A DNA stretch of 62,955 nt, counting the filler, from Syncephalis fuscata S228 (Eukaryota > Fungi > Zoopagomycota), in assembly GCA_025786725.1 (NCBI GenBank). It is 4 parts of 4 records of this genome, joined end to end, with 100 filler letters (N's around TTAATTAATTAA, not from the genome) between each part and the next. Parts side by side here need not be neighbours in the genome. Positions count along the whole stretch, not along the records: positions 16,964 to 36,721 come from JAHLTZ010000172.1; 3 more parts are not named here. One strand, written 5' to 3'. The notes beneath the pieces were generated by a model that worked only from the letters and a program-made list of their open reading frames with translations, was not told where the DNA came from and did not search any database. Shown here piece after piece: positions 16,964 to 36,721 of this stretch; the stretch's first letter is position 1; every line of letters starts with the position of its first letter. The translations under genes were made by a program, and so were the position numbers.

Positions 16964-18349
16964 CTTAACTATACTGCTTATTAATACAGTAGCTAATATG
17001 CAGCTTGCTGGCGTGTATGACATTGATCGCCGCTGATGTCAGTGAATATTACCACCAACATTGCAACTATAACGAGCGTGGTTGTCGTACTTATACTCGT
17101 GATAGACATTGCCATGCTGTTGCCTTCTTGTATCGTTGAATGTGTGTATATGGAGGTCAACTATTTGACATGATGCTTATATCGTAGTGCTGATTCCATT
17201 GTAATGCCATGCCTAACCTGATTATAGGTAGTAGCAATACAGCTACTTTTTTATAAACGCTTTAACATTTAGCATCCTTTAACTAAATAATATGCTATAA
17301 ATCAACATTAGTATAGTGTCTAGTAGCTTTGTTATGCCATTCAATATTTGAATTGTACTATACTGCTAGTATACTAAAATAGTTACATTCTATAAAGCTA
17401 CACCCACACTGGTCATTTTAATAATAGCAATAGTGGTTCGTTTGATTGGTTTGATTGTGTTAAGCCTAGTATAATAATATTAAACAATTTGCTAATGATC
17501 TAGTATGATTTGAAAGATAAATGGCTAAATTTAACAACATCCAATCTATTGGGCATGAAACTGTGTGGTGGATGGCATTAGCCATTAAAATACTCGTCAT
17601 TATAGATTTAGTATTTAGTATGCATATGCCTTCTATCCACCCATATCATTACTATTCTGTATTTATTAAGTCATATATCGATCGGTCATATAATAAGCAC
17701 AACCCATTTACAGCAGGTATTTTATTGCCGCTAGCTTTATTGCTATAGGTTCAATTTATTGTACTTACCTAATCGTCTATGTATATCTTCACTATTATTT
17801 TATCCATTGATTCTATTCTAAACTATACTCATCATGTCTTATTGATAAAACTCGTTTATTTGTTACTCGCCGTATTGTTTGTATATTTTACTTGATTGCT
17901 TGTGCAATACGCATACTATACCTTTATTGCCATTATTTTACACTTTATTTGACCATTCATTTGAATCTATATTATTCCATATTATAACACGGCAAGGAAG
18001 AAGCTTGTGATCTTGTTAAAAGCTAGTATTATTTGAAAACAAAACACAGTGCATGAATGCAAACAGCAACACTAACACTGCATACCTAAATATCTATGTA
18101 AAAATAACAGTTGATTAAATGGTAAGTAGTTTGAAGTAAAAATAAGCAAGTATTTATTACATAGCAGCGCCAGTTGTCTTACCATAGTAAACAGCCGATT
18201 ATAAAAGCGTACATGGCTATTTGTGCTACACCGTCTTTGTCCGCACAATAATACATATTTAATAAAACATAACAATGCTTACCTGTAGCTTCAAAGAAAC
18301 GGCAAATGCTTTAAATGTAGACTGATAGTCGATAGTCAGAGACTGTCAA

Positions 18350-19789
18350 GGCAGAATGGCGGAATGGCAGAATGGTAGTGGCAGGACGGTGGACTGGCAA
18401 AACGGTGAGATGGTGGAATACCGCTGTTCTGCCATCACCAGTCCACCGTTCTGCCACCACCATTTCACCGTTCTGCCACCACCATTTCACCGTTCTGCCA
18501 CCACCATTTCACCGTTCTGCCACCACCATTTCACCGTTCTGCCACCACCAGTCCACCGTTCTGCCACCACCATTTCACCGTTCTGCCACCACCATTTAGC
18601 GTTCTGCCACCATCAGTCCACCGTTCTGCCACCACCATTTCACCGTTCTGCCACCACCAGTCCACCGTTCTGCCACCACCAGTCCACCGTTCTGCCACCA
18701 CCAGTCCACCGTTCTGCCACCACCAGTCCACCGTTCTGCCACCATCAGTCCACCGTTCTGCCACCACCAGTCCACCGTTCTGCCACCACCAGTCCACCGT
18801 TCTGCCACCACCAGTCCACCGTTCTGCCACCACCATTTTAGCGTTCTGCCACCACCATTTTAGCGTTCTGCCACCATCAGTCCACCGTTCTGCCACCACC
18901 ATTTCACCGTTCTGCCACCACCAGTCCACCGTTCTGCCACCACCAGTCCACCGTTCTGCCACCACCAGTCCACCGTTCTGCCACCATCAGTCCACCGTTC
19001 TGCCACCACCAGTCCACCGTTCTGCCACCACCAGTCCACCGTTCTGCCACCATCAGTCCACCGTTCTGCCACCACCATTTCACCGTTCTGCCACCACCAT
19101 TTCACCGTTCTGCCACCACCATTTCACCGTTCTGCCACCACCAGTCCACCGTTCTGCCACCACCAGTCCACCGTTCTGCCACCACCATTTTAGCGTTCTG
19201 TCACCATCAGTCACCGTTCTGCCACCACCATTTCACCGTTCTGCCACCACCATTTTAGCGTTCTGCCACCACCAGTCCACCGTTCTGCCACCACCAGTCC
19301 ACCGTTCTGCCACCACCATCCACCGTTCTGCCACCACCAGTCCACCGTTCTGCCACCACCAGTCCACCGTTCTGCCACCATCAGTCCACCGTTCTGCCAC
19401 CACCATTTTAGCGTTCTGCCACCACCATTTCACCGTTCTGCCACCACCATTTCACCGTTCTGCCACCACCATTTCACCGTTCTGCCACCACCAGTCCACC
19501 GTTCTGCCACCACCATTTTAGCGTTCTGCCACCACCATTTCACCGTTCTGCCATCACCATTTCACCGTTCTACCACCACCATTTCACCGTTCTGCCACCA
19601 CCATTTCACCGTTCTGCCACCACCATTTTAGCGTTCTGCCACCACCAGTCCACCGTTCTGCCACCATCAGTCCACCGTTCTGCCACCACCAGTCCACCGT
19701 TCTGCCATCACCATTTCACCGTTCTGCCATCACCAGTCCACCGTTCTGCCACCACCATTTCACCATTTTGCCACCACCATTTTACCGTT
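18350..19789. repeat. 22-bp tandem satellite (~62 units, CCGTTCTGCCACCACCA+GTCCA/TTTCA/TTTTA) preceded by a short inverted degenerate block
   Basis: Read directly; 18350-18417 carries reverse-complement units (GGTAGTGGCAGGACGGTGGACTGG). Confidence 0.95.
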
Positions 19790-20135
19790 GAACAATTGAA
19801 CGGTTGAACCGTCGGACTCACTTCCACCACTTTTGACTCCACTCTCTTTTCATTCCTTTTAGTGAACATAAAATTAAAGTACCTGACATCTGGGTCCAAA
19901 ATACCATCATCATAGATTTATTATCCAGTATGCATATATTTTTAATCCAACAATATCATTAAGATGTATCTTTACATCCTACTCTTAGTCAATGACAGGT
20001 TGAACACTTATATTTATTATGCATTTCAATCAGCTTCACTCAGTCCGCTCAGTGCGTTATAGCTTTATTATAGTTATTTTTATTATTAATAACTGTTTAT
20101 TACAATTATTAACCATTTAATGTGATTTGTGTCAA

Positions 20136-20380
20136 ATGGCTACTTTTGATATTCGCGCAACTGGCCTGCACATTTGTTCTATTGAACATGGGGACGGGTG
20201 GTGAGTTTTATTAACGATCAAATCATCACATTTGGTGTGATTTGGTGGTTAAATGGCTATTTTGATTATTTACGCGTTTGAACTAAACATTCAACCTATT
20301 GAACATGGAGCTGGGTGGTGAGCGACATCAAAGTTTAAAACACTTGTCATTATAGATTTATTATCCAGTATGCATATATC
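20136..20380 (+). repeat. Two tandem copies of a dispersed repeat with core CTATTGAACATGG-N3/4-GGGTGGTGAG
   Basis: Cores at 20179 and 20296; related copies at 25801 (+), 26166-26205 (-) and 55241-55270 (-). Confidence 0.7.
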
Positions 20381-23300
20381 TCTATCTACCTACACCACTC
20401 CCTTTTATTCCGCACTTCTATGTATCATTCTACGACATACTGGACACATTCTGTTCATTAAGCACACCAGCACACTCTACTCATTCCCTCCTTGCGTTAT
20501 ATGCGCTATAGTTTGACATCGTTTATATGTCATTTTACACTCGCCCATCTATACTCAATCCAAAACTGGTTTTATTTTTGTTCTAGCGTTATTATTAACA
20601 ACTGTCGACTAATGTCGCTCATTGATCATGCATATATGCTCAGTAGCTATACCACTGCTGTCCATACTTTTTACTTTGTATATTCGTTTTATTATCCAGT
20701 AAATACGCGCTAGCTATTACCGTTGTCTGTTTGGTTCTAGCACCATTATTAGAAAAGTTCACGCAAGTTGCTTATCTACTCATGCATATATGCTCGATAG
20801 CTTTAACAAAGCTAGTTGTCTTTTAACTAGCATAGCTGATAGCTGTTATGCTATTTTACCGTACAGTTACTATGCGCCATCAATAACTACTGCCAGCTTG
20901 ACGCCAGCTTTAATATTGACAAGTTTGACTCGTTCCGCTTAGTCATTCCTTCTCAAGGCGCACTATAGCTTAATGCTGCTACTCACACAATTACTTTTGG
21001 TATTTTATTTGCTCCATATTATTGTATGCTTAATGGCTATGCTTTATTTGCAGAAGCTATACGTTCCTTGTTAGCTGTTTGTTGCAAAATTTAGCCCTGA
21101 GCACTTCTTTTACTCTTTGCACACAAACGCGCAAGTAGAATAGCCTTCTTACACTGCTAGTGCTCTTTTTGCTGTTTTCCAGTGCTGATATGTTGCAATG
21201 GTATCGAACGGGCCAGCGATGAACTGGTATAAGCTATTATACCAAATAAAGCTTGTTATTACAAAACAGATATTCGCTATGGGTGTTATGTATACGTGCT
21301 TTAAAAGTGTCGTATAGCTTATTGCAGGGTAATCATGTATTGCGCTATAGCTACTTGAGCATAAGGACAAAGTGTACATATATTTACCATGTGGCCGTAG
21401 ACAGTGCTGGCTACTCTATTCGACACAGTTAAAAGCAATAATAAACTTGGCCAAAAACAATTTGCTTTAAAGATTTTATTAGATGGATTGCATTAGTATT
21501 CAACATATAAGCCATTGGTATTTACTGTAGCTACAAGCTTGAAACTGGTCCCATTTAGCTGCTTTGCGTGCCGCCTAAATGATCGGCATTGTTTGAAATA
21601 AAGCCATAACTGATATTGCCAAATAGACAGATTTACTTGCTATGCTACATGTAAAGTTTAGCATAGATCATTTTTACGCTTAGTCGGTTAAGCCGTGTAA
21701 TCTAGATTTAATCCATCAGCCTATCGCGTTGTAAAGAGCTTGCCAATATTAATGTTCAGACAATATAATGACAGCAATAAAGACTCTTTTGCAATAAGTG
21801 TACAAGAAAACACACGGTTTACTACATATTACACTAATAGTTACATGTACTGAAGATTCTACTGGAATGGTTGTAGCTGCTTATACGGAAGACTAAAAGC
21901 AATTACGTAGTACATTGGTCATAGACGGTTTTAGACGACTCATGTTTTATTACGACATTTTCTGCAACTATCACAATACATAAGCTGGCTTTACTGCTCC
22001 TCCGAACCAACATTGTATCTTTATCTTCTCTTTCTACTCTTTACCACTCAATATACGCTACACTCATTCGTTCTTACTGTCCTTTGTTGTTCAATATGCT
22101 TTACACTCGCTAGACGTCTAATGATTACAAGATCACTGCTGGTTGCTGCTATACATACTAAGATAAGTAGCTGTCATGTGTGGTGTAATGCAATTGGCCT
22201 TTTACTATGTGAGCATTTGTAGATATATAGCCAACTAGACGCTATATGATTTTGTGGCCTGTATTTCAGTGTGCTGCAAACGGTGCTAGATTGCACATAG
22301 TTGACTGACCTTTTTTAGTAGTAAATATGAAGTTTGCTATGAGCTTGTTCGTTTGGTTGCATTGATAAGTATTTGGGTGTAAGTGCAGTATCAGATTTCT
22401 ACTTGCCTGTTTTTGAATTGAACTGGGTATGGCGATAGAATCGGGTGTTGTTTTTTACAGCGTTTGTTAGTGGGACTCCGCATGAAATTGCATAGGATTT
22501 ATACAATACAACGTATACAAACTGCCTCCATGATTGTGCGCGAGAAAGCTAGCCAAAACGCAGTTGTTGGTATGGTTTTATGAACGTGATAGATGCTGGG
22601 GTCTTGATCGGGGGGGAATTCCCCCTGCTCCGTGTTATTACGGATCATAGCTATTAAAGATGGCTGTTCCAGTGCTCTATCACTGTAACTACGCGGGCAA
22701 GCAGCATTGCACAGTCAAATCGCATGGCGGTATACTTATTTCTTTTTAAACCGATATAGATTCAAGAATGCTGCTGTTCAACAAGAATATGGCCGTAGTC
22801 TACTATTTATCTACTTGGTTTGTATTATTCTATTTATATTTGTATTAAATAAAAATAAACTTTTTGTACATATCAAAATGTTATAATAGTTAATGTAATT
22901 ACAGTTGGACTATTTATTTGACAATCATTTCAGTGATTTATTTAGTTAATTGCTTTTTTTATGTTATTACTACGTTAATATTAAACAATTTATTAACAGT
23001 TTAAAGTAATTTAGAGGGTCAAATGACTATATTTAATCACATTCCCGCAACTGAATTAGTCATTTGTTTTGTTAGACACACAATTGGATGGCGATTAAGA
23101 TTAGTCATAAAACCATCATTATCAAGCACACGTATATCCACCATCTATCCATATCACCATCAGTGCATATTCTTTATAATCTGTGTCGTTTTTATGCTTA
23201 TTCATGCTTATTCTATTTAGAATTGTTATTTGTTTTACACTGAGTTTATTCTTTATAAACTTCGACATATTTCACAGTGTAAACTCATCAAGTTAAATAT

Positions 23301-23681
23301 GAAACTGGTTTCACTTAGAAAAATTCGTCATTATGCCAATAACATTTACATTCCTTGACGTTGCGGCGACTTTACCATTAATTACAACGCCGATCAATTA
23401 ACTAGTTCGTGACAAGCGGTATTTGATAATACTTACAAGCTTGTCTAGCCTTTTTTGGTACTTAGCCCCGTTTTTATGTAGCTTCGATGCATACTTTAAT
23501 TATAAATAATACCAACATACATTGCATTCCAATAGTCATACACAATCGTGTAACCGTTTTACTATGAATAGAATAAACTAAGCCACAATTGTGCAAAGCC
23601 CTTTTTCTTTTTACATTATTGTTTATTACTGCTCATTTTTTTGTCACGTTGCAATTCTAGCGCAGTTATTTTTGATCAGTC

Positions 23682-25734
23682 ATGCCTTTGAACACACAGA
23701 ATGAACGTTTGTGGAATAACTACGATGTTTTGATGCATCTGTTTTGCTATCTTGAATACAAGGATGTAGTACGCTTGGTCATTACCTGTCGAATTATTTA
23801 TCGACAAATTGTTGATTGGCCTGGCTATTGGAAACGACAATATAGGCTAAAGTTTTGCCTAAGCGATCGACGTGAACAGGAGTGGCTTGCCTGGTACAGC
23901 TGGTATATTCATACTATAGTAAAAGCCAAGAATACTACGACCGACGTAAATAAACAAAAACGAAAACGAAAACGCTCATCATCATCTATTACTGCACCTG
24001 TTAATAACAATGATGATAAACATGTATCGCCTTTCAACGATTTGTCATTTATTCCTGATTTTACTGCCAGTCAGTGGTTTTATGTTTATTATCGTCGTCT
24101 ACAAAATGACCGTAATGTTATGGAAGGACAATTTACCACACGGATGTGCCAATTGCCGTTTGATAGCCACATTCAACTAGAGCTTGCTAATGTAAACTAT
24201 TGGAACGCATTGGCATGTAACAAGGACGCAATGACACTATGGTTAATTAAGCATGATGTTTTACAAAAGGACAACGAAGATAACAGTATAACAATGACTT
24301 GCAATGAACTATCTATTCCTTTACCACCATCTTTATTTGATGGCAAAATTCAAATCCATTTTGTTTATGGAACACATCGGTTTGCCATGGCTGATGTTAC
24401 TATAAGCACATATGATGATGTAAAATATATAAATGTTGGCGACAAAATAGGTAAATAGTAATTATTAATGCTGGCAATTATATATTGACTAATTAATGTT
24501 ATCAATAATAGTGAATATCGACGATTTTGAAGCGCAGCACATTAACGAAACTGGATCTAAAGTTTTTGCTGCTTCTAATGAACAATCTACTAGCTCATCG
24601 GTTAATGTGCTTTTAAAGAGACGAGAATGTTCATGGAGAACAGCAACTATAGTATGGCCTATTGCCGATAGTTCACCACCTAGAATCATCAACCTTCGAT
24701 GCAAACATAAAAACAACCAAAAAGAACCAAAATTGCCTGATATCTACAACGACTGGATGCTAGTACATGCCAACTATACAAAAAGTTCATGTCAAACGTT
24801 TAATTTGTTTGATTTGGATGGCAATAAATGGATAAAAGGACCAGTATTACCTAGTTATAACTCAGGTGCTTGTATTCAATTTGCGTCCCGTAGTCAATGT
24901 CAATTTTTGATGTGGACACCAGTAAACGACTCTGTAAAAAGTGACATTGATCTTACGCCCACTACCATTGAAGAGTCAGGAGCCGTTGATAATAAAAATC
25001 AATCAACGTATATTCAGTGGGAGTTACATGGCACTCAAGAAGGCCAAACTCAGTGCAAGAAAACGCTATCTGGTCAATTTACTGTTTTAAAATTTCCAGG
25101 CTGCAACATTAAAGCACAAATGTATACAACCAACCTTTGTCTAGTCGTTGTATATCATACATTTAATTTTTTTTCTCAAAATCTACTATTAATGTTTGCA
25201 CTTGGATCATTTGGTGAAAATGATTCGACACAAACATTATTCGACACGATAGATTATAGCCAATCGATGCCAATCAGTAGTTCCGCCCAAGGACGTATTC
25301 TATGGAGCCGGCCCATAAATGATGATGTAATTACGGGTTTATACAGCAAGAAGTTGGTTACTGTTCAAATTTTTAATGAAATCGAAGTGCTCAATGCTCA
25401 AGATGGAACTCTATTGCGCTCAATTACTTGCCCATCCCACGTAAATTTTACACCATTCCTTGGGTCATTATGCGCGATGGTTGATAAACAAAATGGACCA
25501 AGTTGGTTTGTTGACATGCATACTGGTTGTACTTACAAGGGACCAGCATGTCTTATTAGAAGAAAGAAGGAGGACGCCAAAGAAAATAGACTTTCACGCT
25601 CCATTAATGCAGTGCCAGCACCATGTTCATTTTCTGGTATACAGGTTGGGAGTCTTGAGTGCCATACTTCAAGTTCCATTATTGGCCGAATCAACGTAGA
25701 TTCCGAAGTTTCGTACGAAGTACATAGTCTATAA
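23682..25734 (+). CDS. N-terminal F-box protein, one intron (24451-24511)
   Basis: LWNNYDVLMHLFCYLEYKDVVRLVITCRIIY...YWKRQY is F-box-like; a GT-AG intron joins the two ORFs in frame. Confidence 0.8.
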
Positions 25735-25800
25735 ATAAAATTTATTTTTATTTTTATAAACAATTCATTAATAAGTTATTAAACATTTAATAACATCCAA

Positions 25801-26205
25801 TCTATTGAACATGATGATGGGTGGAGTGACATTAATCGTCAAACACTCATCATTGTAGATTTATTATTAGTATGCATATATCCACCATTTACTTATATCG
25901 CTCCCATTCTGTATCATTTCTTGCTCGCATAGTCTTGCTCTATTCAAAACTATTTTTATTTTGTTTTAGCTTTATTATTAATAAATTTCAACTCATTCAA
26001 TTCATTCATTTAGCAAGCTATATGTAATTAAAACATATAACAATAGAATGTATCCAGTATAGTATAGAATAATACATAGCATTATAGATGTATATTGTTA
26101 ACGATACAAGAAAATAGAATATATATATGCATACTAAATAATAAATCTGTAATGATGAGTATTGATAATTAATGTCATTTATCACCCAGTTCCATGTTCA
26201 ATAGA
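25801..26205. repeat. Inverted pair of the dispersed CTATTGAACATG repeat (MITE-like geometry)
   Basis: About 38-bp imperfect inverted repeats TCTATTGAACATG...GGGTG...TGACATTAAT around an AT-rich core. Confidence 0.55.
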
Positions 26206-26400
26206 ACAATTGTTTAATTTGATTGCGCAAATATTATAAATCTTTATAAAAGGTATTGTTTTATTCTCAAATCAAACTACAAAATACTCATCACTTTAGC
26301 AAAAATGTAAGTTGATGTATTATGGATATCGTGAATATTGGTCCACTACATTCTCTTAGTATTATCAAGCTATATACTTGATACCAATACAAATTTGCTA

Positions 26401-28392
26401 TTACTGATGGTGCTGATGATTGCCATCTTTGACTTTGCTATCATTGTTGTTGATATCATCGATATCGTCATTGTTGTGCGTATCATTAGGATAAATCTGT
26501 GGTGTAGCCGGCAAAGGGATATGCATCGCCACCGATTGTAAATCCGTAGTAGTCTGATTTGCATAGCTTGAGTCAACATCAACCATGCTGACCGAAGCAG
26601 TAGCAAGATTAATTCGTCGGGCAACTGTTAGACCGCGAGGCATGCTACCCTCTGAACCTGACATAAAATAAGCATCTGATGTAGGACGTGATGACTCGTA
26701 GGACATTGTAGTAGCAAGAGTCATAACACTATCACGGACTGTATTATTCTCTCTTAGGCCAATGCCATTATTTTGATTGGCCTCTTCAATCGCTAATTGC
26801 TCCATTAATCTTTGAGCATCAAATGAACTAACTGATTGTGGTCGCGGCATAACTAATATTGGTTCATTAGCAATTGTTTTTGTGGTCATCAGACCCATTG
26901 ATGATCTTCTCTGCTGTAGCATATTGGAAGAGGTTGGCGCTGATGCTGATGCTACTGTTGCTGCCGCAGTTGCCGCTTCTGCGGCCGCATAATTCGAATA
27001 TTTAGGTGTGCCTAGGGATGTTTGCGGCGAAGAATCACGTTGTATATCCCTTGATACATTAAGTATACCAATCAAATCCGAATTATCGTTTGCTGTTGTA
27101 GATGCGGTCGCTTGTCCTAATACAAGAGCATCAGGCAAGGCAGATGATCTAATTGGAGAGGGTGGGCTTAGAGTTGCAATAAGAGCGCTGCCAAGTGATG
27201 TATTTCCGCGTGTATTGCTGGTGTTAAGTACTGATCTTCGGGTGCGTGTCTGTTGCTCGGCCGACATTAGTTCGTTAAGCTTATCGGATAATGGGCCGTC
27301 GTCGTCGGAGAATGCATATGAGCCATGGAATGACTGGCTATCATCTTCTTCAATAAACTGCATAGTGTTACCCGCTGTTGTTAATTGCGTTTGCCAGCTT
27401 GTGTTTCCACTTTGATCATGTTGATAAACAACGCCCATAGCTGCAGCTGCAGTAGCTGGATTACGGAAATTGGCAAGAGATTGCCGTGGTGGGCGCACTT
27501 GCTCTGGATCATCCTCTGACCAGATTGAGCTGCTCTCCCACATTTCATTCTCATTGCTATAATCAGAACGTACACCGAGTGTGTTTGTTCGATCGATGCG
27601 GTTACGTATAGAGTGTGATCGCTTAACGCTAGTCTCACGGCTTAGTTGTCGGCTTGTTTGTGCTTCAAGCTGTAGTCCACTAGTGTTATGGAACTGATCG
27701 CTAGTTGGAATGGGAGCAATAGGGGTCGATGAGTTTACAGGCCGTGGCACATGTGCCGGCCAGTTGGCTGGAATCTGGGGTGGAATACCCCATGCATCGG
27801 CACCACCTTGCGAGGTAGTTACGGAAAATGGTGTTGATGTTATAGTCATTGGGCTTTGGTTAGCTTGATTGTTCGTCGTATTGAGTGCAGTAATATGAGA
27901 TGGGCTTCTTATTGGCGAGGGATTACGTCGAACCAAGCTGCTAGCACGTAAGGGAGGACTGCGAAGAACATTGTTACCATGTATGTTTGATGAGGCACGT
28001 GTCTGTAAACGGCGAGCTGTTAGCAGTTGTTGCATCTCTCGCCGTCTCCGTACGTAGAGCACCATTGCTACACCGAGGACCGCCAATACGACCATCGATA
28101 CCGTAATACTAATCAGTATAGGGGTATTAGTGCCTCCTCCCTTGCTATTATCAGTTTCCGAATTCGTATTATTTGTTGGCCCGGGGTCAACGAAAGAAGT
28201 CGTCGGTGTAGCAGCTGACTGTTGTGCCTTTGCCAGTGGGACTACAATAGCCAAATCATTATGAATGGCTTTTGAGTTTGGTTCCGGTACGCTAATACCA
28301 CCTAGTATAGGTGAATTGCCATTATTTTGGCCAGATGGATTTGGAGCATCAGATCCAGGTCCTACACCGGTAGGAGTGGGTTCCACTTCCAT
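26401..28392 (-). CDS. Single-pass membrane protein with a long disordered cytoplasmic tail
   Basis: 663-aa ORF; TM ILISITVSMVVLAVLGVAMVLYV followed by RRRR. Confidence 0.8.
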   Translation of the reverse strand: MEVEPTPTGVGPGSDAPNPSGQNNGNSPILGGISVPEPNSKAIHNDLAIVVPLAKAQQSAATPTTSFVDPGPTNNTNSETDNSKGGGTNTPILISITVSMVVLAVLGVAMVLYVRRRREMQQLLTARRLQTRASSNIHGNNVLRSPPLRASSLVRRNPSPIRSPSHITALNTTNNQANQSPMTITSTPFSVTTSQGGADAWGIPPQIPANWPAHVPRPVNSSTPIAPIPTSDQFHNTSGLQLEAQTSRQLSRETSVKRSHSIRNRIDRTNTLGVRSDYSNENEMWESSSIWSEDDPEQVRPPRQSLANFRNPATAAAAMGVVYQHDQSGNTSWQTQLTTAGNTMQFIEEDDSQSFHGSYAFSDDDGPLSDKLNELMSAEQQTRTRRSVLNTSNTRGNTSLGSALIATLSPPSPIRSSALPDALVLGQATASTTANDNSDLIGILNVSRDIQRDSSPQTSLGTPKYSNYAAAEAATAAATVASASAPTSSNMLQQRRSSMGLMTTKTIANEPILVMPRPQSVSSFDAQRLMEQLAIEEANQNNGIGLRENNTVRDSVMTLATTMSYESSRPTSDAYFMSGSEGSMPRGLTVARRINLATASVSMVDVDSSYANQTTTDLQSVAMHIPLPATPQIYPNDTHNNDDIDDINNNDSKVKDGNHQHHQ

Positions 28393-29764
28393 ACTATAAT
28401 CAAATCAATAGTATTACTATTGACGATGGAAATATGCGCAATTGGTATTGTATAAATGATAGCAGTGAGTTATACAGCTCAATTGGAGTTACACGCCAAA
28501 TGATAAGCTATCAATGACAATAAAACAGTTGGAAGATACAAAATGTAGATGAAATCAAATGCTAAAATGGCGAATGGCCACGTCGATGTTGCGAAAATCG
28601 ATTGATGGCAAGTAAGACTTGTGTAAACAAATAACGTGTAGTTATCTTTTTCTTTCTTTTGTCAAAAATGAATGGATGCAGTAAATGAAGGAAATGCTAT
28701 AAGAGAATGCTAGAATAGATAGAAATATGCAGATAGAAATGCCAATATGCTATGCTATAGTCAATGTAGATGGTGAACCTATGTACGCGGATATGTACCA
28801 GTGCAGCCGTGTGGCGTCAAGTTTGTAAACAATGCTATAAAGATACAACTGGACATGCAACAACTTGAACACACAGCAAGCAGGCAAGCAAATATTAACA
28901 CCAATGCAAAAATGCGTAAAGACAAAAGAAAGAGAGAAAGAAAGGCAATGGGCGGTGGGAGATACAACGCCATCGATTCTATAAAGATAGCGCCATAGTC
29001 CTTTGTTCTTTTTCCATAAAGCCATTGTACGACCATAGTCGCCAATCCACATGATCGATAAATATAGTTGGTTGATTGATTGTGCGAATGGATAAAACTG
29101 GCCTTTTCTCCAATGGAGCCCAATACAAACACAGCTTATCTATATGAGGAATGCTATGACGTTTAAGTGGGGGGAAGACAAGAGCAAAGGCGTATGTATA
29201 CGCATTATTATTTGCATATCACTTTTCTTCTTATAAGCTAGTTTCTGGTTTTAAGTTCAATAAGCGTTTACTATTATGTTTCTTTTATGCACTAGCATCT
29301 GTTATTGCCATATTTGGTAAATATAATTATCTAAATCTTCACACACTGAATAATCGTAATAAATACTTTAATGATTCATACAATCGATACAACTCCCTTG
29401 CATCACTTGTCAGTGGCTGCATTGCCCTCATTTCATTTCACCATATAATGCAATTATCATGACATCCATATAACATAGTAGATATAAACAAAACAAGTCT
29501 AAAGTACTATTCAGCGTTTATAGAGTGGTGTAATGTATTTATTATCATAAGCGTGTCTGTTAATAGGATCGGCAATGGACATTGTCTTATTGCTAGTATA
29601 ACAGCACCATCGATTTGAAAGCAGAATGACCAAAACAATAGCTGAATCTTGATGTATGATAAACTATACGATGTAGTTGTCAAACAATCTTGTCGTCTAC
29701 CGAATGTACACCTAAATATACTGCAATAATAACTACAGCTACAACTTACCCGGTTTGCTAATTA

Positions 29765-30246
29765 TTCTATGTATGTCAATATATAAATGATTAGCTCTGT
29801 ATAAAACTGAATTGAATAGCCAATTTATATTTTAGCTTACACTCTATTCATCGCTATTGAGGAATAATGCTAGTTTTGTCATACAACTTACCATCTACAA
29901 TAATAATTAACCAATAGCATACATGAGTGTTATGCTATTAGTTTGTCATGCAACTTACTATCTATGATAGTCATTAGTTATTATCATATATAAGTAATAA
30001 AAATCAATATTGCAATGTATATTTAAAACTAGGACTTACCGTCTATTGAATTTAATTTGCTATGTTTATAAAAATAAACGATAATCAGTTCAATGCAGTG
30101 CTGGCAAAGGCTGTTCTAGTGGTCATAAAATATAAAATATAATCACAACATGCCACAGCAAACCATGACTGGCATGGCAGTTGTCACAATTGCATTGGAC
30201 ACGAACACCAATAGAAGGTGTAGATGGTAGCAATAGAAAACTTCAT
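29765..30246 (-). pseudogene. Micro-exon peptide gene paralog (four 3-nt exons), probably disabled
   Basis: Exon 1 30246-30154 reads MKFSIATIYT-(1-nt fs)-LLLVFVSNAIVTTAMPVMVCC; GC donor; 3-nt exons ACG (30042-40), ATA (29961-59), ATG (29894-92), AGT (29843-41), each TAG|NNN|GTAAG; spliced tail DDNE*. Confidence 0.75.
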
Positions 30247-32909
30247 GGTAATATAAATTTGTTAGAATAAGCAGGTGTATCAAAAGTAGGGGATATATAA
30301 TAGATAGCTGTGTAGAAAGAGCTGTGTGTGTGTGTGTGTAAAAAAAGAGAAAGAGTTCAAGTGTGATAGTGGTTGTGAATTGGTAAGCACTATTTAAGTT
30401 CATGACAATGATGTGAGTGCCGTTTAGTCCAGATAGTGCGTTATGTATACCGCATGCATCAATATAACTATTGCTGTATTATGCATTGAATGGGTATGCA
30501 TCAAAAACAAAATATGCAAACAACACATGTGGATATGATTTACACCAATTAAAATGCTTCTATTAAATGCTATGCGACGCGTGTTGGCTTGCAAAGTAAA
30601 GTTCTAAATTATCATAATCTGTGCTCAGTAAAATCTGTTTTCATTCATGCAAATGCGGTGATGGTAAAAATCAAGCGAAATGTGCCTAGTCTAAAAGCTC
30701 CAATCAATCTAAATTTCGCTGTTATCCAAAGGAGCTTCATTGGCTTTTTAAAATAGTGATGCTATTTGAATGTTTATTGCGTGCATAGCAAACCACACAA
30801 TTAAACTAAAATCGACTTTCCATTAGAATGTCACTTTAGCTTTATTTATGTCATTAATAAACTAGTAATAGTATCACTTATATGTTATTAAAGATTTTTG
30901 CTATAGAATTATTATAGTTGACCAGTAATAGTTTAATCATATTTCTTTTGGCAATAAATAGTCTATCTATTATCTTTTTATTTAGCTAATCGCTTGCTTT
31001 TTACTAGCACATTATTAATGACTTAATATAAACATTGTTAAACTACATCAAGTTGCTAATAGACTGTTTGATATCAGCATAATATAAAAAAAGCAGATTA
31101 ATGATATAGTTGTTGAAGTAGCTGGCGTTGGTATAGTTTTATTAAATGTAAATAATTGTGCTATGCTGTTATTGTTTTTAAAGCTTTGCATTAATTTATA
31201 ATGACAATAGTATTAATACTAATATTACTATTGATTAAAGTTTCTGCTTCATTTCATTTGTGCAACAAGAACATAAACTTTTAAATAACCAGACTATTTA
31301 CAAATTATAAGTCTTATTCATTATTTAAAACAAATAAGCACATTTTAAATAAACAATGGCTGGCTAGACAATAATCTAGTAATTCTATTGATTCATGGCC
31401 ATTAAAGTCGCGGTAAAGCATGATCTATAGTCTCCTTTATAGTAGTATCTTTAACTCCGATAAAGCAGTTTTAAATATTTCAAAAAGCGCCGTTTTTATT
31501 TCATAACTATTAGCCAAGCAAGATACAATACATCAGCAAGTAATTTCTGTTTATAATCTATAGCAATCATCAATAAAAGAAATTTTAATTGGCAGCTATC
31601 AAATAGCGGTTAAACATACTTTAATAAAACCTTTTCTTCAATAAGGTGGAACTGACTGATTGAGGCAGCAAAGTACTTTTTGTTTCACTCACTCACTTAA
31701 TAACATCCACTTAGCACACACTATTCATTCATCCACACACGTTCATTACACTTGGGCACCCAGCACACCCGTATAACACGCACACACACACACACACAAC
31801 TTTCTCGTATTTCTTGGCCTTTAAGCTATTACACACTTTTCTCTCCTTTCAAATTGACCTATACTTCATCTGTGCTTTTCTGGCAATTCACCTACTTTGT
31901 CGCCTATTTATTTCGCTACAAACGGGTAGACGTAGCCTCGTGGAGTTGACTTGCCAAGTAAATAACAAAGCAAGGTTACGCCTTCCTAGTAAAGAGTCTA
32001 GTGTGAAGTAGTCCTTTTCTATTTCTTAGGATATCTTTTTCATTGTCGTCTCTCTGTTTCTCTCTCTCTCGTTCGCCAACTACTCAGTCGTTTCTATATC
32101 ACAGCGACGTATACCGCCAATACAACCGATACAAGTGTGCGTGTGTGCGTGTGTGTTTGTTTTCGTGTCTTCCTTTGTTGTTGTTCTTTATTGACACAGC
32201 TCGCGGTTTGTCCTCCGCTAGCTATTTATTCGCCTAAAGGAGATTCCACATTTATCATCTCGTTTTCCTTTGTTGCATAAGTATTGATACTTTGAACAAA
32301 CACTCGTTATCTAGACTATTGGATGGTTATACCGGGCGGTACTGGCACCAGTATTAGTCTCCAGTGCAGTTATAGCTATTGTGCTAAACTCTCCTACCTT
32401 CAGCCATAGTCAACGAAAATAACCGTGTTTATCAAATAATTATTTGGTAAGTAGTCTTTGTATTACAGAATACATACCTGCCTATATATATATAAACATA
32501 TATATCCTGACGGGTACATATCTTGGCCTATTATTATCAATGTTATTCATTTTACCTAATGGCTAGTGTTATAATTAATGAATAATATAGTTTATTATTG
32601 AACAAATGATCAATAGTAAATAATATTTATTTAACTTTTACAACATTTGTTAATCAGCACATTTACTGCTTATACTCCTTTATTTAGAACAATTTGCTGT
32701 TATTTCGACGCACCAACAATTAATATCTATTGTTTACAGCGCCAGTAATTGTACGTATCCATAGATACACATAATAGATAATATTAATTCTATCGATACT
32801 TAATCTAGGTGTTCCATTACCACTATTACTACTACCACAATTGTTATCATTAGTATTGCAGTTATACGACATTTCCATATCCAGTGCCTCAATTCTTGCA
32901 CGTCATTGA

Positions 32910-35900
32910 ATGATTGTGCGCGGTATGGATGATCCATCAGTCAATAACGTGACGGTCATTGCTTCAGGTCCAGATGAGCCATTGACCCGTACACCATCAT
33001 TGCCGGCCAGTCCAAGCAATTCATTACGCTTTGCCCGTCCACCACGGCCTAATTCGAGAGGCAATCGACGACATAGTCTTGTAGGGGTATTCCCATCTGC
33101 TACCGATGCTGTGATAACCACTGCAGCAGAGTCCACTCCTGTTATGCAACGTAGTGCATCTCATGCTCCATTCTCGAATAATGAACATACAATTGAAGGC
33201 AACGAGTCTACAGGTCGTCCTCGCCGTCCCATGTCATACCATGCTGGATTCCAACGCAACCTATTTTCACAAGAGTCAAATCAACGTTTGATGGCTGTGA
33301 CTGAATCCGCTGCATTAATGACTACTGTAAAAGAAATCACTATGACTGAAACGGAGGATATTGATATGAGTTTGCCAGTATCTAAAGCAGAACCCAATAT
33401 CATTCCAGATATCGATACAGAATCCATGGAAAGTAATGTTGTCAAAGAAGACTGTCCATCTTTAGAAGAGACACCCGATGCATCTTATAGTATTATAAGT
33501 GATGACACACCATCATTTGCGGCTATGATGGCCGATATGATTGCCTATCCGACTGTATCACCATTATTACCCGTAGTATCACCGTCTAATGGACTTTCCA
33601 TGCTTGTTGATGCCACCTACGAAGAAACAACTACTGTGGAAGAAACAACTACTGTGGAAGAAACAACTACTGAACAAACAACCAACGTAGAAGAGATAGC
33701 TGATAAACAAATAGTTACTGAATCAGTAGTAACAAGGGAATCAATGGTTGAATCAAGCGATACTACTGAACAAGTAACGACTAGTACAACAGAAATTGGA
33801 ACAGCCAATGATATTCAAGATGATGACGAATCTGATCTAAGAATTACTTATGATAATACTGAACTACAAGATAGTATTATTGATGGACTGGCTATTAACG
33901 CTACAGACAATACTATTGTGACCACTATAACCGATACTACTATAAAAGAGGTATTTAGCGATATGGATCCCGATGAAGATGACAGTGATAGCAATGCTGA
34001 AGTACCCTCTGTCATTGGTATGCTATCACCAGAACGTGTACGTGATTCAGTCATCCTTCAAGCTGAAAAGAGTCCCCAATTACTGGCATTACGTAATATC
34101 GATGATATCGATGATATCGATCCATTATCTGGCAGCCATGATGGCGACAGTAATAACAGTGGAAGTAATAGCGATGAAGATATGGCTGCATTATCACTTC
34201 CCGGTGTATTAAATCCAGCCAATCTAGTAGTTGATGAAGCCATGCCACCCAAATCACCTCTACTCGGCAATGCTGATCATGATCATGAACACACCACGAT
34301 TGAACAAGCATTGATATCACCTATCGAGTGTTTACCATCTAGTGCGTTTATTGAGAATAGAGAAATACTCGATGCCATGACAGACACATCAGTACAGCCA
34401 CCAGTAGATGGCGAAGTGTCCATGTTGTCCACATCTGCATTGAGTACTGGATTTCCTATTGCACCAGGTAGTCCAGCGGTTGTTCCTACTGAAATGATAT
34501 CAACAATGAGTGGTATGTCAGATGGACATGATCATACACTTATTGGTGAAGGCCATGGATCACCCTTAGTCTATACAACAGCAGGACCGGCCAATGGAGA
34601 ACGACAAATACTCATTGCTCGTCTATGTTCACTTGGACATTCTGAAGGAGCGGCTAACGATGCATTAGATGCACTACCTAGTGGTAACTTTGATGAGCTA
34701 CTATTATGGATCTCACGTCGTCGATTAGCTATTCTTAAAAGCGATGCTGAAGAAGAGAAACGACTACGACGACTTGAAGAGGTGGGACGGGCAGGTGGCA
34801 GTGTAAATGGCAGTAGCAGTGTTGGTGGCAGTAATGGTACTACCAGTGTTACTAGTCTTCGGGGCCCATCACATCATCTATCTGGACTGGGAGTCAGTGG
34901 TCGATTAAGCGATGCTGATTCAGAGGATTCAACGATACTGTTACCAGATGTACAGTTAATCGATCGTACTACCATTTGTGATCCATTACATCGACCACCC
35001 GATTCACGTACAACGCCCAGACCACGTTCTATCCTGAAACCACCACCGAGTAAAATGAATAAAGAGGGTAGAATGGAAGTGGCAAAGGATTTACTTAAAG
35101 ATACGACAGTTGCTTCATTATGGCAACGATCACGTGTATGGTTTTCATTACCGACCCGTACATCATCAGCATCGACCATGGGTGGATCAGGTGGAATGGG
35201 ACGTAAAGAGGCGTTCCATCAACGTCAAGGCGGATCATTACGGACTAAACCATCGCCGTATTCCGCCTATTTACCAGCACCGCCTTCACCGTCACTATCG
35301 GTTGAGAGTGATGAATTGCCTATTCGTCAGTTAAAACAAGTTCGTTTCCCGGTACAAGCAATGGCCATTAAGTATTTATATGTTGCTGAACGACCCATTC
35401 AACCTGGGCTTCGTTTAGATGAGCATGGTCGTACCGAAGATGGCCAATTACTAGATGGTAAGTTATATATATATATTACTATAATAGTTATACTAATATA
35501 TACATATATATATGTATTTATATATAGCGAATGGACATGCTCAGCTACTTAGTCATCAGAATAATCAAGGTGTCTATGATAGTTTAGAGGCATTGGCTAG
35601 TAATACACAATTATCCGGTGTTGATCATCCACCGGGTCTGGTATCATTGGCCGGAGGAGAACAGGTGAATGGATCAAGATCGAGTGGACATGCATCGACA
35701 TTACATCCTGCTACTAAAAGTGAAGCACAAGCAGGCATTACTATAGATGCCGCATTGGCAGCCGGTGCACCACGGGACATCAATGATGATTCGCCTATTA
35801 CACCAATTGAAGAAGCACGTCTACATTCAGCACGTGAGCTATCGGTCTATTATCGTCGAGCTTGTCAAGCCCGTCATGAACGGCCTATTGATTCGGTATT

Positions 35901-36721
35901 ACAGCAACTTAGAGTAAGTACTGTAATTAATGTATTAAATTTAAGTTGTAATCGTGTTTATTATTAGCGGGCAAGTGAACGAGCCGAACCATTAACCACC
36001 CTATCATTGACGGGTAAGTCATCTAATAATCGTATTGTTGTTGTTGTTTAATATTTACATATGATTAGGTATTTATTGGAACGGCGAGCGGCTGATGCAT
36101 TATCAGATATGCTTATACTTCGTTCAGGTCTACAGCGACTTGAACTTAATGACTGTTCTCTCGTTAATGATGCGTTGAAATCAATTCTACATAGTCTATT
36201 ACTAGTAGATGAATTACAAGAGCTTAGTTTATGTCGCAATAAGCGTATTAGTGCAGACGGATTTAAATATATTGCTATTTATACGCGAAAGGTAATAGAG
36301 ATAGAATAGAAATAGAAGTATTTATTAATATTTATTAATTTATAGGCTAAACATCTTCGTTTACTTGATTTGTCGGGTTGTCGACCTGACAAACGAGGTT
36401 GTCGTTACTTGTCTCACGCTCTTGCCTCTAGCAGTGTTATGATGTTACGTAGCGCTTTACGTACACTTTATTTAAATGATTGTAATCTACGATCAACACT
36501 ATTAGAAGTTCTTGGTAAGTAATTGATAGATTCTACGCTATATATTGCGTATACTTATGTATGATTTATGTTAGTGCCATCGATTCGTCGGTCTAATGTT
36601 ACCGAATTGAGTATGACGCATAATCGATTTGGTCCTAATGGTGCAATATGGGTAGCGGCCTTACTGGATGCCGATTGGCTTCCATCTGAAGAGAGTAATG
36701 GACTATTTGCGGTATTGAAAG
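32910..36721 (+). CDS. RNI-like LRR protein, PP1 regulatory subunit PPP1R37/Mhp1-like (3' end cut by gap)
   Basis: SILK and KQVRF (RVxF) motifs, YRRACQARHERPIDSVLQQL, LRR exons LQRLELNDCSL and LQELSLCRNKRI. Confidence 0.75.

Follow-up and report, generated by a model that had tools for sequence, protein, structure and literature searches.

The window analysed here is a stretch of 62,955 nucleotides, filler included, from Syncephalis fuscata S228, and Syncephalis species are obligate mycoparasites (PMC13188720). On its minus strand lies a locus at which GenBank calls no gene on scaffold JAHLTZ010000008.1 (GCA_025786725.1). Direct reading gives a start in ACC-ATG context at 30246, opening on MKFSIA, a first segment of 93 nt, and four units of the form TAG-NNN-GTAAG, namely ACG (30042-30040), ATA (29961-29959), ATG (29894-29892) and AGT (29843-29841), with spacers of 111, 78, 64, 48 and 74 nt. 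The first segment carries a 1-nt frameshift near 30216-30215, GCATGT stands at 30153, and TGC TGT is present. All of these elements had been listed in a preliminary description of the locus and all were found in the window. The same description had proposed measuring how densely YAG-NNN-GTAAG clusters occur by chance. Four units within 250 nt were reached in none of 1000 dinucleotide shuffles of the piece, where the maximum was two; the maximum was also two, never four, in 5000 shuffles of the local 800 nt, and two again in 300 shuffles in which any exon size from 1 to 15 was allowed. The four-unit cluster is non-random.

Several other features surround the locus. A single-exon gene of 663 aa at 26401-28897 (minus strand), with one predicted membrane segment and a product identical to an S. 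fuscata protein on JAHLTZ010000008.1, is transcribed with a leader of about 500 nt, and its sole relative found was in S. pseudoplumigaleata (46%). An LRR-domain gene at 31834-36721 (plus strand; 1387 aa in GenBank) is divergent from the micro-exon locus and has a long transcribed 5' region from near 31834; an 18-nt coding repeat at 33621-33694 varies in copy number between haplotypes. Two ORFs of 258 and 412 aa at 23682-25734 (plus strand), with a weak F-box match at the start, are probably one F-box gene, of which GenBank calls the last 68 residues only. A dispersed repeat family has a MITE-like member with two inverted arms at 25785-26241 and further related copies in the neighbourhood of 17529-17662, 19898-19972, 20170-20379 and 23105-23159. 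A 22-nt satellite of about 62 copies runs from 18426 to 19779, and 18357-18397 holds a short copy of it in inverted orientation.

The preliminary description had the locus as a second member of an S. fuscata multigene family, a putative family whose other member, described with Arg-Arg and a Trp-rich 9-mer, lies outside the piece analysed. Relatives of the locus were searched for with exon 1 and with the exons singly. The word search, whose power is limited by the shortness of the query, found none, and neither Pfam nor Rfam gave a match at the locus. About 29 kb of scaffold held no relative, and the locus was absent from the syntenic interval of S. pseudoplumigaleata, where the LRR gene and its neighbour are adjacent, with no cluster and no similarity. 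An 86-aa ORF at 30403-30143 was considered as the gene and rejected: it has no Pfam match, its last 49 residues have no homolog, and the RNA contig, by the estimate of its 5' end, stops about 14 nt short of the ATG of this ORF.

Transcript, haplotypes and coding content

Transcription was assessed in one run (X1, labelled "RNA?"), probably of the sequenced strain, as assembled contigs, from which rare forms drop out. The contigs cover the neighbouring gene and 29413-30312, with zero coverage at 29058-29254 and 30437-31618; this pattern, together with joints at GT-AG ends, indicates that the run behaves as a transcriptome. They carry both haplotypes, and the locus is transcribed from both.

The contig block from 30312 to 30040 is continuous, unspliced and gap-free, which makes the frameshift a real one and shows retention of the 111-nt intron with a GC donor. 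The first exon as transcribed (30040-30312; this and all following features of the locus are on the minus strand) comprises a leader, a broken signal-peptide ORF, the retained "intron 1" and ACG, and its contig carries about 77 nt more on the 5' side, ending near 30389. Within it, a putative ancestral signal-peptide/pro exon (30154-30246), recognised heuristically, carries the frameshift near 30216-30215 in both haplotypes. The putative former intron 1 (30043-30153) is retained in all RNA contigs shown, and the 30153-30043 junction is absent from the X1 contigs, which rare splicing of this intron could escape. A working GC-AG intron 1, as had been proposed, was not seen, GCATGT itself being present.

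The ACG unit (30040-30042) uses its donor, as seen in the joint 29961-30040, and use of its acceptor was not seen. Downstream, intron 2 (29962-30039; 78 nt, GT-AG) is spliced, the 3-nt exon ATA (29959-29961) is included, intron 3 (29895-29958; 64 nt) is spliced in the fully joined form and kept in intermediates, and the 3-nt exon ATG (29892-29894) is included, with a joint 29766-29892. Both adjacent 3-nt exons are spliced in: in the fully joined contig a single letter remains between 30036 and 29767, and ATA plus ATG is the sole fit of eight combinations. This is RNA-contig evidence for the splicing of consecutive 3-nt exons in an early-diverging fungus. In the joined forms, ATG runs straight to 29766 and AGT is skipped. 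The AGT unit (29841-29843) has intact signals in the window haplotype, its inclusion was not seen, and the donor and acceptor of intron 5 (29767-29840; 74 nt) are used, as indicated by a loose end at 29845 and the joint to 29766. Besides AGT skipping, the variant forms in the contigs consist of intron retention. The gene had been thought to end at 29765, whereas the RNA continues through a 17-nt exon (29750-29766) with an in-frame TAA and an internal TAG, the latter a possible alternative acceptor (giving an 8-nt exon in the same frame), a spliced intron 6 (29697-29749; 53 nt, loose ends at 29697 and 29750) and a last exon reaching about 29413 (29413-29696).

Joints at the predicted sites bear out the earlier claim of real splice sites as opposed to a repeat artefact, and the look for spliced RNA that had been proposed yielded ATA and ATG joined. 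The proposed set of four 3-nt exons holds for these two; ACG is only the end of the long first exon, and AGT is skipped.

The part of the window analysed matches the GenBank scaffold at about 99% identity, and so would represent a second haplotype or an assembly closely related to it. The divergence of about 1% and the RNA alleles of both haplotypes across window positions 16964-36721 are consistent with a heterozygous strain. The exon-1 frameshift is present in RNA and in both haplotypes. The base suspected to be missing at about 30215, for which a read check had been suggested, is indeed missing in the RNA contig and in both haplotypes; pseudogenisation or an assembly error had been offered as its cause, and only pseudogenisation stands, the same break in RNA and in the second haplotype having led to the rejection of an assembly error. 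The GenBank haplotype has lost the AGT acceptor, with SNPs between the haplotypes at 29842/29844. The contig of the allele without this acceptor keeps intron 4 (29844-29891; 48 nt), whose retention is possible in that haplotype, and splices introns 5 and 6; AGT skipping is due in part to this allele. The splicing constraint that the preliminary description had read from the preserved spacing would have acted at best in the past, one haplotype having lost an acceptor. With the frame broken in exon 1, intron 1 retained and an acceptor lost, no peptide coded by the micro-exons is made in any of the forms seen.

The start at 30246 is the first ATG of the transcript, with none in the 149 nt before it (30395-30247), and the frame it opens is 20 codons long. 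In the RNA-supported transcript, no ORF runs through the 3-nt exons. A signal heuristic that asks for a basic N-terminus, an uncharged core and A-x-A followed by P was set up with the sequence of the locus known; of the 461 non-coding ATGs in the analysed piece, only that at 30246, with the break read through as X, passed it. The signal-like start is visible only across the frameshift. A phase-1 reading of the units gives DDNE and then TAA, whether AGT is present or not, and beyond this TAA reading can continue in frame for another 14 codons, over the spliced intron 6. An intron 14 nt or less past the stop suggests that the ancestral peptide was longer than this 4-mer, which may be a decay product. 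DDNE had been put forward as the product; with the frame broken upstream, intron 1 retained and the frame continuing past TAA, it is made in none of the forms seen. The window copy has no dibasic site and no repeated peptide cores. The intron lengths given earlier (111, 78, 64, 48 and 74 nt) hold. The introns had been described as no longer near-identical; introns 3 and 4 have kept a measure of similarity (75% over 64 nt; p=0.0065, uncorrected over 15 pairs), consistent with an origin by tandem duplication of the unit.

Codon-sized exon arrays in metagenomes

A three-unit DNA pattern derived from the locus matched at least 120 JGI metagenome stretches, 111 of which were analysed. Nine ENA/GenBank-type contigs, possibly of human-associated origin, were set aside after a first overview (L020, L023, L031, L053, L056, L068, L075, L082, L102), and the TGG pattern of four of these also occurs in a Segatella copri contig. 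Among the 111 stretches listed, 81 had variable triplets at intron-like spacing, 12 had invariant triplets and 18 were short-period repeats. In a control on prokaryote genomes, 45 of 46 matches had at most two different triplets and were CRISPR-like or simple repeats by appearance, so that variable-triplet arrays are essentially not prokaryotic; the remaining match was variable and lay on a short low-GC MAG contig. When the triplets of the listed matches were concatenated, stops in the three frames numbered 23/1214, 36/1104 and 133/1104, fewest in phase 0, in counts blurred by missed units and overlap artefacts. The invariant-triplet arrays (L003, L046, L096, L134-L178; GGA where inspected, period about 70 nt) were mostly cyanobacterial, CRISPR-like repeats mimicking the splice pattern.

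NACHT-ankyrin genes run straight into arrays in L043, L073 and L086, which appear to be nank-type genes of environmental fungi. By eye, ankyrin or NACHT-ankyrin ORFs also end directly before codon-sized arrays in L006, L016 and L114, and a HET domain lies downstream of the array in L091. Long variable arrays, of up to about 60 units, were seen in L004, L054, L061, L071, L085, L108, L113 and about 60 loci more; a short upstream exon ending WFPNYW is common to L054, L061 and L113.

Of the 58 listed arrays that have sequence upstream, 5, belonging to four families, directly follow an open predicted signal exon in phase 0; among control windows the figure was 9 of 10262 (a background of 0.09%). 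These families (L021, L077, L117 and L014/L045) have 7-27 putative codon exons each, and the signal exon of three of them ends in Arg. In L021 (12598-13850, plus strand), and likewise in L123, L124, L125 and L127-L132, a pro-piece ending KR precedes 12 or more units that read as a Cys- and aromatic-rich peptide; near-identical copies in other samples differ in intact donors and unit number. Gene calls show this type solely as a read-through ORF of 68-72 aa. L117 (6073-7141, plus strand) has a signal exon ending DR, 14 units and near-identical intron repeats; L077 (1018-1627, plus strand) has an exon ending IR, a GC donor on its first intron and 7 units up to the contig end; L014 (4453-7466, plus strand) and L045 form a further family with signal exon and codon array. 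Weaker candidates are L024/L059 and L074. Intron size and branch-point motifs look fungal on direct reading in L021, L077 and L117, less clearly in L014. A constraint on the triplets was considered among L021, L123 and L127 and dropped, the shared triplets being unchanged at 94% column identity, which is not significant.

The architecture thus recurs in other organisms, as open signal exons before codon arrays in these four families. The window locus shares no detectable sequence with them and is read in phase 1, they in phase 0, so that what is shared is a design and not an established homology.

Reading of the locus and its alternatives

Transcription and fixed frame-disrupting lesions are both found at the locus, and we consider it likely to be a pseudogene, still transcribed, whose ancestor coded for a secreted peptide with about one codon per exon in the mature part. 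In favour of this reading, the first ATG lies in an ACC-ATG context, the signal start is unique among 461, introns 3 and 4 keep residual similarity, open signal exons directly precede codon arrays elsewhere, and the Tuber nank genes offer a precedent for the splicing mechanism. Against it stand the lack of an intact S. fuscata relative in the word search and the 29 kb of scaffold, and the difference in phase from the four signal-type families. In such a gene, the first exon would have supplied a signal peptide followed by a short pro-piece with a protease site at its end, and tandem duplication of a unit of intron and 3-nt exon would have built the array. Including or skipping single units would then have changed the peptide by one residue with the frame kept. 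The peptide may have been secreted, its most likely role being recognition or interference between fungi; secretion, processing and function in the ancestor are presumed. At present, the locus is still transcribed and its 3-nt exons are still joined by the spliceosome, with the frame broken, intron 1 kept and one haplotype short of an acceptor.

The same transcript could be non-coding or carry only a short ORF, micro-exon splicing being a by-product of a duplicated intron unit and the signal start a coincidence. The lack of any ORF across the 3-nt exons, the unspliced intron 1 and the absence of a protein relative fit this, as does the tendency of AT-rich DNA to give hydrophobic residues. However, the signal-like start is both the first ATG and the sole pass of the heuristic, the same layout recurs elsewhere with open frames far above background, and no Rfam match was obtained, so we regard this explanation as unlikely. 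Several independent lesions, and a frameshift fixed in both haplotypes, make it quite unlikely that the gene is still live, whether through minor splicing of the GC intron, with the break bypassed as well, or through a functional ORF of 20 codons, or of 10 codons from an internal ATG. GCATGT is weak as a GC donor and no joint was seen there, although L077 does have a GC donor on its first intron and contigs drop rare variants; transcription from both haplotypes would suit a live gene too, and the loss of AGT leaves the phase-1 peptide the same. A stranded tail of another gene type, NLR-like NACHT-ANK as in Tuber, captured later by the present promoter, would recall the metagenome genes that run straight into arrays (L043, L073, L086), but neither a long ORF nor a NACHT or ankyrin remnant lies upstream on the same strand, the contigs stop near 30389 and 30437-31618 is without coverage, which renders it very improbable. 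A chance pattern or assembly artefact in AT-rich intergenic DNA that GenBank leaves without annotation is hardly credible given 0/1000 shuffles, joints at predicted sites and a locus present in the second haplotype.

Beyond the pseudogene reading of this locus, a wider proposal seems to us about evenly balanced between true and false: an undescribed, widespread fungal class that couples a signal/pro exon to an array of codon-sized exons, with a relic here and live members in L021, L077, L117 and L014, acting as a combinatorial peptide library by skipping, evolving as single units are gained and lost, and missed by gene callers.

Comparison with known systems

The locus itself is probably dead, and its worth lies in pointing to a class: the pattern derived from it finds at least 81 variable arrays in metagenomes, part of them attached to NLRs and part preceded by signal peptides. 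Should those of the signal type be live genes, they would amount to a hidden, hypervariable secreted peptidome of fungi, misread as short read-through ORFs (P0003-P0007) or missed; if true, this would also offer a natural model for how the spliceosome defines 3-nt exons.

Codon-sized mini-exon arrays are known in the nank NACHT-ANK genes of Tuber melanosporum (PMC4986451, PMC9815663), and have been regarded as a peculiarity of one lineage, confined to the immune receptors of truffles (PMC13449251). Like those genes, with their C-terminal, alternatively spliced run of 3-nt exons between short introns, the window locus has consecutive spliced 3-nt exons (ATA and ATG). It differs in that no NACHT or ankyrin sequence lies upstream, as it does in the metagenome loci L043, L073 and L086; instead, there is a putative signal-peptide exon and a tiny predicted secreted product, in a Zoopagomycota host, with 4 units and not dozens, in a broken copy. 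Schistosoma MEGs carry 10-20 short exons per gene, which measure 3/6-81 nt and for the most part 15 nt, and introns of 0.1-5 kb (PMC10526429). The parallels are a signal peptide, putative in the window locus, followed by very short exons, mostly multiples of three, with variation by exon skipping and a parasitic bearer, as an analogy only: the window units are all 3 nt, the introns 48-111 nt and the organism a fungus, and the FL..FX6W motif was not seen. Neither Pfam nor the word search, of low power for a short query, gave a sign of MEG homology.

With KEPs (PMC6339444, PMC9769878), the signal-type loci would share a fungal signal peptide and a basic processing site that frees a short peptide, judging from the KR or R ends in L021, L077 and L117; unlike KEPs, there are no repeated cores, the core comes from separate exons, and the window copy has no basic site. 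Fungi are known to splice exons of 3 nt or less, with 27 3-nt exons in 26 genes of Coprinopsis cinerea (PMC12230235), where such microexons stand nearly always one per gene in ordinary proteins, whereas the window has consecutive units. A literature search, most subscription journals aside, returned no report of Syncephalis microexons, of fungal secreted peptides coded by microexons or of codon-sized arrays behind signal peptides. The locus is like the Tuber arrays in splicing and like the MEGs in layout, and is a member of neither, nor of the KEPs. The new part looks to be the coupling of a codon array to a signal peptide, and the locus is a decayed member of a probably undescribed variant.
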